From Glycera tridactyla (Eukaryota), in contig OZ286466.1 in assembly GCA_965644265.1 (NCBI GenBank), forward strand, positions 4,092,001 through 4,156,000: a stretch of 64,000 nt of DNA, written 5' to 3'. Each line of letters begins with the position of its first letter. Positions within the stretch are counted from its first letter, which is position 1. A program made the translations under genes and the position numbers. Positions 24,173-57,600 of this stretch are shown in pieces. The notes under the pieces are model-generated. The model made no database searches and was not told the origin of the DNA. It worked only from the letters and a program-made list of their open reading frames with translations.

Positions 24173-24357
24173 CTAGCCTCCAACCAGAACAGCTGGGGAA
24201 TTCCAACTACTGCACTTGTATTGGGCAAGCACTTGGACTTGAGGAAATCGGGCGCAGGACTCCCTTGGTACCGGGTAGCAACAGAAGGCGGCACAGGCTG
24301 AGAGAGGCGGTTTGCACACCCCACATTTATCTGATTTTACCCAGAAAGAAGTTGAAG
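24173..24357 (-). CDS. Candidate alternative terminal SERCA exon (Cys-rich tail)
   Basis: Strong acceptor ctctttcttcttctgcag, phase 1 compatible with the 24483 donor, open for about 60 codons. No independent support. Confidence 0.35.
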
Positions 24358-24399
24358 CTGCAGAAGAAGAAAGAGTCCACTTCATAGAATTATATCATA

Positions 24400-51600: not shown

Positions 51601-54600
51601 CTTCCAAGAGATATCAACTGTTTTATTCTCCACATTACTGACATGAAATACACTACAGTATTCTTAGAATACTCACCTTCTATTTGATTTTCAAGAATAT
51701 CTAACCTACTTAAGCTATATCCCTTTGGAAAATGACCTGCACAAGGTTGACTTAGGATTAACCATTTGCCAAATAACTTTCTTTCATCATAATATTGATG
51801 TCAAATTTGAGTTGAAAGTTCAGCAGTTACAGTTAGAAATTTCGAAAAGGAAAACATTAATATTTGTATTAGATCACAGAAGACTGACACAGAGTTATGA
51901 AGCAACACTACTGAGCTCTCGTATCATCAAACACACATGAAACACAAGACCATCAAAGGACAGGACAGGACAGAAGAGAACACACAGACAGGACAAAACC
52001 TACACAGACTCATACCCCCGAGTACAGCAACTACCTCTCCAGGATGGTCTCGCAACCAGTAGATCTATGTATAATGCCATTCAACATTCTGTGATAAGTT
52101 CCAAATTGTCAAGTCATATCTTGTCTTTTTTTTTTCCTATTTTTATAGGGCACTTCCTCCACCATTGAAGGGGTGTGAGCCACCTCTGAGTGAAATGATT
52201 ATATATGATTTTAATGGTTATATCAAAGGTATCACAGAATGCCATGATATCTATAGTATGAAGATTCCAGAAATAATAGATATTCATACATAAGCAGCTA
52301 CTTACGATCTTCGACTAATGATTCGCCTTCAGATCTTGCATCAACAGGAAGTTGGATAGTATACAGGGAGGGAAAGAATTGGCTGGAATGCTCAAACTGG
52401 ATGGGAAAGCACCATTCTGTGGCAAGCCATGAGATTCTCATGTAGGACGGGTGATAAACATCGAGGAAGGCTCAAATATCTTGACTACATTTCATTTTGA
52501 ATGATTCTGAGTTTATCATGCCAATGAAGCAATGGCTCTTTTCCTGAAGAAACTTAAGCGTTCCTCAAATCATCTAATGGCAGACGAGATCATCGCCAAA
52601 GCTTTGGTTTCTATCAAATTGAGAATCTGGGATAGGTGACTGATCCCTCAGGGCATAGTGGAATCGGTGGCGAGCAGGACAAGGAGATGGAGGGGCAGCA
52701 TAAGCAGCAAGGTCAGGGTCAGGGTCAAGGTCAGTATCAGGAGTTTCACAAAGTGTTCGAGCTAGAAGTCTGCTTTTTCAATTGGACCCTCTCTTATTTC
52801 CCAATCCTTTCATTCCATTTTCATTGGGTGAAGACATTGGAAAAATCAGCAAGTGATGTCACCAAGACCCACCCTCCGATTCACACACGAGGACGCGATC
52901 AAATCAGAAACAACTCAAACTTGTAGGTAAGGTCCCTATATCAAACCACTCTTCCACTCCGAATACATTAATATGTACACAAGGTACTCAAATGTTATCA
53001 CAGACCCATGCCACTTCAAGATGAAAACCAGATGTCGATGACAAGGATGAAGGTGCACAAACTCATGCATATACACAGCGATATTGCAAGACATGCTCAT
53101 CAAGGACCTCTAAGGGAACTTGCTTTCAAAGCAAACTTTATGTGCCTAGAACATCGCTCTTCTTTTCCATTGAGAATGAGGCCCTCTTTTGATGAGAAGA
53201 CTCCATTCATAACTCTCAATATAAGCGTGCGGATGTGGCAAATTTCCTGAACTATACTTCATTTGTTCAGATTATGTGCTTCAGCAGTAAGGGCACGCTT
53301 GGAATATCGCTGCATATATATATATATATATGCATGAGGTAACAACTGACGATGATCACCGGGGACTATCATGCTCTAAGGAATCAGGAACTAGATGACT
53401 GTGACAAGTGATGTGGTGACTGAGAGGTTAATGAGACATGTACAGGTCAGGAGGATGACAACACAATTGTCTCTAGTTGCCAAGAACCAAAATATAGAAG
53501 GCTCCACAAGCAACAAAGTCACCATGGAAACAAGGTTTGAGATGCAGAGTGGTGAGAAGGTAATATAATAACTGAAAGCAGTCAACAATAATATAGATGC
53601 GAAACAAGGTGAGATGAGGACGCCCACGACTTGGCAGCCATGTTTATCTCTGATGTCTGGGTAGGAGGAAGCATCACTGAATCAAAAGCCAGGCCATTGA
53701 ATGAGCACACAAGTCCCCTGGTCTCATTCAGACTTTGAAATGCAATTACCCAAGTAGAATAATATCCATTCAAAAGATATTCTCTAGAAAGCGTTCAACA
53801 TGGAGGGAAGAAAATGAAACACCGATATGGACAGCACATGATGAGAATGAACAATTCCAGATCCAAGAAGACATCAATCAGGAGTGAAGACAGTGCAAGT
53901 GTAGTTCCAAACTAGATGCAATCAGTGATTGCGAGTGCCCCGCTGACTGCGCAGTTGGTTATGCTATGCTTCAGTATTCCGAAGCATATACTATGCAACA
54001 CAGTCATTATGGTAGTGCTCTCCCCCTCCCACTTCTCTGCTGGCCTGAACGACAAATGACCTTCTCACCCTCAGGTAACCTTGAAATCCAATAAAGCCGA
54101 CCGAAATAAAATCACCTAGTGACGCTGAAATATAACATAGCAAAGCCAAAATCAAATCAGTTCGTAACTTAGCACTGTGGATGCAATTGCCACATTTCAA
54201 TTAGGCAACTGCATTCATTGTGACATTTTTGCCCAGACACAGCAAAGTATGACAGACAGCTGGAAACGACATATGACCTTTTTGCACTCAGGTGACCTTG
54301 AACTCCGATGTAGCAAACCCAAAATCAAATCAGTTCTGTCTCATGGTACTGTGAATGCACACGTCGAGTTTCAATTAGATAGCTGCATTCATGGTGATGT
54401 TATTGGCCGGAAACCACATATGACCTTTTTGCACTCAGGTGACCTTGAAATCCGATGTAGCAAACCCAAAATCGAATCAGTCCTGTCTTTTGGTACTGTG
54501 AATGTACTCACCAAGTTTCAATTAGATAGCTTTAGTCATTGTGGAGTTAGTGCCCGGAAACCACATATGACCTTTTTGCACTCAGGTGACCTTGAAATCC

Positions 54601-57600
54601 AATGTAGCAAACCCAAAATCGAATCAGTTCTGTCTTTTGTTATTGTGAATGTACACACCAAGTTTCAATTAGATAGCTTTAGTCATTGTGGAGTTATTGC
54701 CCAGAAACCAAAAAATCACGCACCCACGGACCCACGCACCTACGCACCCACGCAACCACGCACCCACGCACCCACGCACGCACACTCGTCCATAGCACAT
54801 CCGCACAGTGGGTCAAGGCGAAAACATACTGCCCCGCTCGGGTAACCGAGGCGGGGCACAAAAAAGTTCATTATATCACTCTGATACAAGAATACAATCA
54901 TGGACAAAATGGATAAAGGAGACAAAGTAGCTCCTCAACTGTTGCGCACCCATCCTCAGGGTACAATCTACACATCCACTGTCACATAAACACGGATATC
55001 TTTTAACTGTATGCAGCAACATAAAAGCCAACACCATGAATCAAAGTTTCAGCAGGAAGCAATTCAATGCCGCATCTAGTTGCACAGAAGCAACAATACC
55101 GAGCCAAGAAAAAAGTGTAATTGACAGAAGCAAGCGTATTAAAAGACAGATCTAACACAGCACCTACTGCATGAAAATAAACAGTATAACTCTTCAAAAT
55201 GAAACAAATCCACCAAGCCAGTCAAATAAGCCGGAGATACCCTCAGTTATGTCAGTATTCAATCACCGTGCGCTGATGATGACAGATGAGTGTGAGTAGA
55301 GAATAGAACCTTCACCAAAGTGTGCAAAAAATGCGACCAACCACCTATGAAATGGATGAATCCCAGGTGACGACAGGCAAACAGATGGTGTTTGAATAAA
55401 GGGAGAAATCTATTGTGAGGCCCAACACAGACCAACTTCTGAGGGGAAGCCTCTATCTTGGGGTAACTCTTCCGACACCTCTCATGAGAGTTCGCCACTT
55501 TGAAAACGACTGTATTTGTCAGTCAGATTTGAGTTCCGAATTGGATTTGAATTTGAGAAAAGAGGGTATTTTTTCAGGAGTAGGCAATAGAATTTTCATC
55601 ATTGCAGAGTGACTGCCTTATCTTACTTCAATTCTGATAGAGAGCCTGCCTTTTCTGCGTGACCGTAATACCTGGGATCCGTGTAACCAACGTATAAAAG
55701 AAATGAACCAGAAGAGATAGTATATTGACAACATTGAAAGTGCCCCCAGAAGAAGTAAGGCGAGTCAATGCCTTGCTGGTGTACAAACCTTCTCATAAAT
55801 GCCCTTAGTATCGTTGTAGTCTACACTTGAATCGTTACATAATGAACCTATAGCAGCGGCCTCCTGAAGCACATCGTACTCTCCCGGCTTGACTATCTTG
55901 CCCTGAAGGTAACTGTACGGGGAAAAAAAAGCCAAATGATCCATTTAAAACTAGAAGCATCGGGCAACTTAACCACAAATCAAACCTTTTCGTAAACGCT
56001 CTTCTCCTCGACATAGTCGACGGAGGAATCGTTACAAAGAGCACAATCAACTGCCAATTCTTCAAGGCAGTCATAGTCTGATGCCTTTACAATGTTTCCG
56101 TCTAGATAGCTGAAAGAAAGAAAAAGGGAAAGGATTAATACATTGAGGCTGGAGTCAGGATATCTCCACATGCCCGCGGGATGGTGAGGATCTGCTCGGT
56201 TGCCATGCCAACTGTCGGGGAGAAGGTGGAATCATGCATTAATGATGGGCATCATGCCAGGAGTTCTGGCAACTAGGGTCATTGGAGATGGGCCTCAAAA
56301 GCACATCATTATGTTGAACATCTTCATGACCAGCTTTTGCCTGATCAGACACTGAAGAATCAGAAGTTTCTTGTTGCTCATAGCAACTAGACACAATCTA
56401 CATAGCAACGAAAAGTTTTCGGCCTTCTTCCACAAAAGACTTATCAAAGGTATGAGATACCATTATAGTAGGTTGGTTGACATATATGTGCCAAAATGAC
56501 TTTGATTTATTTGTGAAAGACTCGATTTTCAACTTGGTGTCAGTTGCATGTCAAGCTTCAGGATCTGATTCAGACCACGAATGAAGATGTTCATCACCCT
56601 ACTAAGACCATGATCCCATGAGGGGATCATACTCTTACAAATACGGACTCCGCTGACTTCAAAAACCTCTTTCTTCAGTGAGCACACACACTCTTCTGAT
56701 TAACCAATCATCACTTGACTGATACGTGTTGTCTATAATTCTTGGAGCAAGAGATATCCCGCGAATAAATTCATGCGAGTATATAAATACATGTGATTTC
56801 ATACCATGATTTGTATTTCAGGACAGATTTGACATCTGTTCAAATGATGAGTTCATGGTACTGATAGTAAGCTAGAACATCAGCAAGCTTACAGGAAAGA
56901 TGCGAGAGTTGGCTCGTGATGAAATAGGAGTTTGATTGTCATAGCAGAATGGAGGGATCGGTATGTCATGCACACGACGTCTCAACAAACCTTCTCGTAG
57001 ATGCCCTTGGTATCGTTGTAATCGACCGAGGAATCATTACACAAAGATCCAATTGTGCCCATTTCCAAAAGTGCATCATAATCACCAGTTTTCACCTTCA
57101 CGCCACCCTTGAAACTGGAGGGAAGCAAGAGAGACTTACGAATTAATGGGAGAGGACACAAATCCATCACGATGACATCATACAAACCTTCTCGTATATA
57201 CCCTTGGCGTCGTTGTAATCAACAGAGGAGTCATTACAGAGAGAGCCAATGCCAGCAAGCTCAATCAATGCGTCATATTCACCCGTGTTTGCTTTCTTGC
57301 CCTGCAGGAAACTACAAAATAATGCTCATCATCAACACCCCGTCTACCTGTCAAAATGATTCTAGAAACCACATCTCGCAGATATTGTTTAGAAACGAGG
57401 ATCAAAAATTCACTCAAAGGGTGCTCCAGTTTGGGTCATCAAGAGCCTAGTCACTAGATAATTTAAACTTCTTCAAAAATAAGTGAAGAAGTGAAGAGAA
57501 GTCACATGGGCAATGTGGTCAATGCCAGTCGCTAGTATTTCCAAAATTCTATACAGATACCGGCTACAGAGTACATAAAAACGGTCTTGATTGCAGATCC

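Follow-up and report, generated by a model that had tools for sequence, protein, structure and literature searches.

A SERCA gene of the annelid Glycera tridactyla with three clusters of duplicated exons, apparently used one at a time, and two alternative C-termini

The DNA analysed here (the window) is a stretch of 64,000 nucleotides from the annelid Glycera tridactyla (assembly GCA_965644265.1, contig OZ286466.1, positions 4,092,001 to 4,156,000), and nearly all of it is occupied by one gene for a SERCA Ca2+ pump, which lies on the minus strand and runs from beyond position 63999 down to 2514. Three exons of this gene occur as tandem clusters of 2, 4 and 7 copies, here called X, N and M8, and its M10 exon offers two alternative tails. 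We consider it very probable that in this annelid SERCA one member of each of the three duplicated-exon clusters is spliced into the mRNA around a constant core. The layout of the gene was obtained with tblastn, using full-length P-type ATPases as queries, and exon ends were set by splice sites and reading frame.

The assignment to SERCA draws on several comparisons. Among solved structures, the gene's largest exon, 47789-48212 (c48), matched residues 700-844 of SERCA1a best (E=7e-84), far more strongly than SPCA (5e-38), PMCA or Na,K-ATPase. A concatenated isoform aligned with annelid SERCAs over 738-746 residues at 83-86% identity and with zero gaps (86% to an ENA protein, 84.8% to Platynereis dumerilii Atp2a and 83.4% to that of Capitella teleta). 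The phosphorylation motif CSDKTGTLT, with the DKTGT core expected of a SERCA, is located in exon 63155-63379, and the hinge motif in c48. The motifs of the Ca2+ sites are also present, with PEGLP of M4 in exon 63155-63379, the M5 motif and NLVTDGLPA of M6 in c48, and IEM of M8 in all seven copies of the M8 exon. Judged from its sequence, the gene is thus a SERCA, a P-type IIA Ca2+-ATPase.

Six-frame self-comparison of the window revealed, on the minus strand, seven repeats at 30.9-42.5 kb, four at 55.7-57.3 kb and a pair at 61.4-61.9 kb, the copies of the M8 and N exons matching each other pairwise with E values of 1e-10 to 1e-28. The original prediction had described seven intact copies of the L7-8/M8 exon and four of an N-domain exon, and both arrays were confirmed by the self-comparison and by exact exon ends; it had overlooked the two-copy X array at 61.4-61.9 kb, which lies outside the part of the gene that it covered. 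The two members of the X array are 89 nt long. X1 (61852-61940), defined by alignment and splice sites, corresponds to residues 366-394 of SERCA1a, and X2 (61427-61515) is joined by RNA contigs to N1 and to N2. Their acceptors read TTTTAG and ATACAG, and both have the donor GTAAGT.

The N exons, each of 124 nt and corresponding to residues 396-436, are arranged as two close pairs. N1 (57188-57311; donor GTTTGT) and N2 (56991-57114), both placed by alignment and present in RNA contigs, are separated by an intron of 73 nt, the same length as the intron between N3 (55986-56109) and N4 (55789-55912; placed by alignment and splice sites), and the middle N2-N3 intron measures 881 nt. All four donors begin with GTTTG. 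N3 is the most divergent copy of this array and is intact, with a proportion of nonsynonymous differences (pN) of 0.29-0.33 against a proportion of synonymous differences (pS) of 0.84-0.92. The N exon takes in the surface loop through which vertebrate SERCA2 contacts phospholamban. In the intron that follows N4, positions 54262-54783 hold 3.1 tandem copies of a 147-nt unit (91% match), followed by a microsatellite of the 8-nt unit CACGCACC; the tandem repeat produces a spurious plus-strand open reading frame of 222 residues.

The M8 array comprises M8a (42318-42451), M8b (40592-40728), M8c (39054-39187), M8d (37654-37787), M8e (35816-35949), M8f (33304-33437) and M8g (30953-31086). M8b is 137 nt long and each of the others 134 nt, and in all seven the acceptor is AG and the donor either GTAA or GTAG. 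M8a, M8b, M8c, M8e and M8f were delimited by their splice sites, M8d by structure alignment to SERCA1a residues 871-914, and M8g, a conserved type hereafter called g-type, by its orthologues in relatives.

All 13 array copies are free of stops, flanked by AG and GT, in the same phase within their array and of a length that is not a multiple of 3, and they thus present the adjacent homologous exons of matching length class and phase, with intact splice sites, by which mutually exclusive clusters are recognised. Copies within an array are 54-80% identical at the DNA level. Their pS values range from 0.48 to 0.95 and are mostly saturated, and their pN values range from 0.08 to 0.36, well under pS in all pairs. 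Because synonymous sites are mostly saturated the duplications must be old, and because pN is low while pS is saturated each copy has remained under protein-coding constraint.

The M8 exon encodes helix M8 and the L7-8 loop on the luminal side, in which the disulfide pair lies. In an alignment of 14 M8 sequences Thr871, His872, Cys876, Cys888, the MALS motif, the IEM motif (Glu908), Asn911 and Asn914 are invariant. Variation clusters in the luminal loop, between the two cysteines or just after them, and the net charge of this loop ranges from +4 in M8a, the most divergent copy, to -1 in M8f and M8g. Since the exon aligns to SERCA1a residues 871-914 it includes Glu908, a site I Ca2+ ligand of SERCA. 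The array is therefore not free of Ca2+ ligands, as had been supposed, although this residue is the same in all copies, and the statement that every catalytic and Ca2+-binding exon is single-copy does not extend to M8. For the remaining exons it can be checked only from M3 onward, because the 5' third of the gene, including the A domain (TGES) and M1-M2, falls beyond the end of the window.

The lengths of the alternative exons have a direct consequence for the reading frame. With exons of 89, 124 and 134 or 137 nt, skipping or double inclusion should lead to a premature stop, and in computed translations two members of one array, or none, did so. By contrast, every one of the 112 combinations of 2 X, 4 N and 7 M8 exons with 2 tails was translated as a single open frame to the stop. 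The gene could therefore encode up to 112 pump variants, with the array copies apparently used singly; this count (2 x 4 x 7 x 2) replaces the 56, or 84 with a third tail, put forward originally.

RNA evidence in this species was taken from four small runs, available as Logan contigs and mapped over the interval 55760-61759, which contains N1-N4 and X2; such contigs register presence and not absence, and conserved contigs may be filtered out. Run X5 contained two contigs of 171 nt. One of them, X2-N1-c51 (depth 3395), consists of 26 nt of X2, the complete N1 exon and 21 nt that exactly match the start of the constant exon c51, and the other, X2-N2-c51 (depth 1271), is the same except that N2 replaces N1. 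Read on the strand of the gene, both joints (57311|61427 and 57114|61427) are bounded by GT..AG, and the pair is shaped like the alternative-exon bubble of a de Bruijn assembly. In these two contigs, then, the same flanking exons enclose N1 by itself or N2 by itself, as mutually exclusive splicing predicts. Single-exon searches of protein databases for transcripts of this species gave no exact match, length limits excluding the fragments in which such a match would lie. Two intronic parts of the mapped interval, 57560-57760 and 60560-61160, were covered by many contigs from all four runs (90-95% likeness); their summed depth was high and loose ends were numerous, and self-comparison showed inverted coding-like repeats at 60.8-61.1 kb; this RNA looks like that of an expressed repeat or transposon family and not like SERCA mRNA.

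A look at the same exons in related genomes, proposed with the original prediction, found the arrays again, and the feature is accordingly not unique to this genome. The genomic contigs L001 and L006 (ENA) and L008 (Logan), from related animals, carry two X exons (an X1-like followed by an X2-like), one N exon and two M8 exons, these being an f-type (like M8f) and, after it, a g-type with 79-84% identity to M8g. Over a wider set (L001, L006, L008, L012, L014, L015 and L016) orthologues of M8g show 77-84% amino-acid identity. Between the alternative exons of the window and their orthologues in relatives pS amounts to 0.57-0.90 and pN to 0.07-0.34, and the splice sites of the relatives are kept. 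L001 and L006 have in addition a duplicated c50, whose copies lie 58-60 nt apart (L001 5713-5999; L006 4900-5191), and this N-domain exon (residues GAPE...YGTG) forms a fourth exon pair in these annelid-like contigs; a second copy of c50 was sought in the window and none was found. In the intron after c49, L006 also contains a tandem array (7920-8974) of some 15 units, each 70 nt long and with an in-frame stop, that stem from the 3' end of this exon.

A scan of metagenome contigs yielded 79 loci, and at least 50 related contigs have 2-7 M8 copies, all intact. Dozens of the loci have two copies, and larger arrays were seen with three (L016, L021), five (L015, L023) and seven members (L014). The g-type exon is the final one in every array that holds it, and some neighbouring M8 copies are just 64-85 nt apart. 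Single copies are found in an arthropod-like compact gene (L003-L005) and in L007. When the seven M8 copies of the window were compared with the seven of L014 for one-to-one orthology, only the g-type exons paired clearly, in a tree that is built on 44 residues and poorly resolved.

In the full-length mRNA-like contigs L009, L010, L013 and L040 of relatives, the X, N and M8 exons are each present once and once only. L009 and L088, which come from sister samples of the Joint Genome Institute (JGI), are colinear over 3.6 kb, with 99.5% identity in constant protein columns and 100% identity in X, N and c50, and their M8 exons are 57% identical. Identical flanking DNA encloses a swap of precisely 134 nt, an f-type M8 for a g-type. 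Mutually exclusive splicing of M8 is thereby proved directly for a related annelid. Full-length annelid proteins include both types of M8 and both of X; the M8 of Lumbricus rubellus D0EXD5 is g-type, Platynereis Atp2a has an X1-type exon together with an f-type M8, and the L013 mRNA has an X1-type exon. In a JGI metatranscriptome, annelid SERCA protein pairs (P0338-P0341) are 99.8% identical in their constant parts and 91% identical in the M8 exon, a difference that probably arose when one M8 copy was exchanged for a closely similar one in a further species. Outside the annelids, GenBank/RefSeq isoforms of one locus of the gastropod Littorina saxatilis differ in the M8 exon, f-like or g-like, and in three tails, and oyster SERCA isoforms differ solely in three tails. 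Because the Littorina isoforms carry the f-like and g-like exons, the M8 pair predates the split of annelids and molluscs.

The choice between splicing and read-through at M10 that had been predicted agrees with the two types of tail in annelid SERCA proteins. The M10 exon (24400-24600), assigned from splice sites and annelid proteins, contains an internal donor GACG|GTAAAA with 24483 as the last exon base; this donor is identical in L001, and the arthropod-like gene has the donor GTGAGA at the same place. Read-through reaches a stop at 24400-24402 and adds a tail of 27 residues with a hydrophobic segment that resembles an 11th helix, a type of tail also present in Capitella and other annelid SERCA proteins. 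The spliced tail of other annelid SERCAs follows the pattern TD-V-x-x-x-x-DPM/I, and a search with GAYCCNATG gave one minus-strand site in the window. It marks an alternative terminal exon at 2514-2560, which encodes V-KELVDPMTGERRMV-stop, follows the acceptor ccttttccag|TT and lies, in frame, 21.9 kb downstream of the M10 donor. The final intron of the short-tail isoform (2561-24482) is thus 21.9 kb long and by far the longest in the gene. Another candidate, at 24173-24385, shows a weak similarity of 16 residues to L001 and is out of frame with the conserved L001 donor; the spliced tail had originally been placed there, for which we found no support, so that we reject this candidate, and the third tail behind the count of 84 is equally unsupported.

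The constant part of the gene within the window begins with the M3 exon (63895-63999, FGTQLSK...GGSWLK), which is truncated by the window end and was located by tblastn and its donor AAG|GTACGC. It is followed by the exon with M4 and the phosphorylation motif (63155-63379) and, after the X and N arrays, by c51 (51125-51361, VGEATETAL..., placed by tblastn and the RNA contigs), c50 (50389-50506, single in the window by comparison with relatives), c49 (49484-49707), c48b (48778-48990), c48 (M5 and M6; solved-structure match and splice sites) and c43 (43862-43947, M7). M9 (25265-25382, set by splice sites and reading frame) lies between the M8 array and M10. The M4 exon, c49, c48b and c43 were defined by tblastn and splice sites, and all of these exons are on the minus strand. 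The sole assembly gap of the window (44603-44976) sits within the 3841-nt intron that separates c48 (ending ...AIG) from c43 (G-YVGCATVG...). The protein is continuous over this junction, without a gap relative to all reference SERCAs, and in L001 and L003 the counterparts of these exons make up a single fused exon, so that the gap conceals no coding exon.

We propose that a single member of each of the clusters X (2), N (4) and M8 (7) would enter the mRNA while the catalytic core stays constant, and that one cytosolic and one luminal surface would in this way be exchanged with Glu908 and both luminal cysteines held fixed. At M10, use of the internal donor would lead to the short tail exon 22 kb downstream, and read-through to the hydrophobic tail. 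Exclusivity would be kept at least partly by the reading frame; the 73-nt introns of the N1/N2 and N3/N4 pairs (58-85 nt in relatives) may add steric exclusion, and nonsense-mediated decay would remove wrongly spliced forms. All 13 copies are presumably used, and the variants may tune the regulation or kinetics of the pump by tissue or state. As to history, the f/g pair of M8 and the X pair are old, and it is the f-type M8 and the N exon that expanded in this lineage.

Several observations weigh against this proposal. Among the 13 array exons, RNA evidence in this species is confined to X2, N1 and N2; N3 and N4 had no contig in the four runs over 55760-61759, and three of the four runs had no contig on any N or X exon, which is not evidence of absence given the possible filtering of conserved contigs. 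The runs themselves are small, consist of contigs only, differ by about 2% from the assembly and are labelled 'RNA?'. In the M8 cluster, to which this analysis was confined, simple scans for docking and selector RNA (complementary seeds, shared 11-mers and sliding duplex energies) gave background values, and the functional consequences of the variants are inference only. One could therefore argue that only N1, N2, one f-type M8 and the g-type M8 are live, the others being decaying or unused pseudo-exons, and that the diversity lies far below 112. Besides N3 and N4, for which no contig was found in a mapping that covered the N array and X2, the divergence of M8a and N3 (pN up to 0.36, M8a on a long branch) would suit this alternative, as would the fact that beyond the g-type there is no one-to-one orthology with L014, a pattern that fits rapid birth and death. 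Every copy nevertheless retains its frame, AG/GT ends and length class despite saturated synonymous sites, all M8 copies retain both cysteines and the IEM motif, contigs can show presence and not absence, and other species retain 3-7 intact copies; we hold a largely inactive set of copies to be rather unlikely.

That the arrays are an artefact of assembly, by collapsed or duplicated haplotypes or mis-joined SERCA paralogues, has a negligible probability in our judgement: there is a gap inside the gene, but copies with 54-80% DNA identity differ much too strongly for duplicated haplotypes, repetition is limited to the array exons, with order and strand constant, independent assemblies (L001, L006, L008, L014 and others) have the same architecture, and RNA contigs join X2 to N1 and N2 over the assembled introns. 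A far closer question is whether exon choice is tightly coupled over the arrays, giving a few fixed isoforms (muscle, neuronal, housekeeping) in place of Dscam-like diversity, and here we would put the chances at about even. Such a pattern is known from Drosophila Mhc, and only X2 has been seen, with N1 and N2, in one run; on the other hand, that X2 pairs with at least two N exons speaks against a strict coupling. In SERCA2b the luminal end of the 11th helix docks near L7-8, and the M8/L7-8 surface and the 11th-helix tail could interact here in the same way; since the read-through tail resembles that helix, it is plausible that the choice of M8 is coupled to that of the tail. More doubtful, and offered as a tentative idea, is that in annelids, and less markedly in other lophotrochozoans, a single gene stands in for the SERCA paralogues of vertebrates; choices among its three arrays and two tails, at least partly independent, would yield dozens of pumps with different N-domain regulatory loops and a graded charge of the luminal loop. 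If true, the seven-member L7-8/M8 array would be a natural allelic series showing that pump properties or partner binding are set by the luminal loop L7-8, a part of SERCA that has received little study.

SERCA is a heavily studied pump whose isoforms are usually put down to paralogues and C-terminal splicing (PMC3527596), and here internal parts of it are diversified by exon arrays under selection. Within each array a single surface varies while the rest of the pump stays the same, which makes the variants well suited to comparison by expression and kinetics. The arrays also record how an old two-exon switch, common to annelids and at least one gastropod, was enlarged repeatedly to 3, 5 and 7 members, and the locus provides a tractable case of splicing control in a little-studied phylum, where exclusive inclusion may depend on the frame and on the shortness of the introns between copies.

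Tandem clusters of mutually exclusive exons are well known as a kind, and the two-type M8 switch is already visible in public sequences; our search of the literature turned up no account of a SERCA with mutually exclusive exons in its interior. A close case is that of Littorina saxatilis, whose SERCA has the same M8 swap with two annotated variants, against seven here, and no differences in N or X among its listed isoforms. Vertebrates have the paralogues SERCA1-3 and the tail splicing of SERCA2a/2b; the gene described here has, besides its choice of tail, internal N-domain and L7-8/M8 arrays. It is likewise paralogues that do in vertebrates the job of the Mhc exon clusters. A review of SERCA evolution attributes invertebrate diversity to C-terminal splicing only (PMC3527596), and the choice after M10 between splicing and read-through, with its hydrophobic tail, belongs to this known invertebrate (Artemia, C. 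elegans, pearl oyster) and SERCA2-like pattern (PMC3527596). Among other Ca2+ pumps, tandem exon substitutions are reported for PMCA in vertebrates, arthropods and nematodes, in a survey that does not list SERCA (PMC9741552); PMCA is, like the present gene, a P-type Ca2+ pump varied by substitution of homologous exons, but its cases are pairs and not a seven-copy array. With Drosophila Dscam1 (clusters of exons 4, 6 and 9) the gene shares several exclusive clusters and a multiplicative number of isoforms, whereas in Dscam1 each cluster offers tens of variants, the choice is stochastic and docking sites pair with selectors, none of which was found here, the search for docking and selectors being by simple scans of the M8 cluster; in the SERCA gene the frame enforces exclusivity at least partly. 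Drosophila Mhc, the muscle myosin heavy chain gene, is one gene with five clusters of mutually exclusive exons (PMC2257972). The likeness to it consists in a single gene for an ATP-driven machine, in which tandem clusters of exons of equal length and phase swap surfaces around a core; Mhc belongs to another protein family, and the SERCA gene has three clusters (2, 4 and 7) plus a choice of tail. What sets the present gene apart is the seven-copy array and the presence of three clusters within one pump gene.

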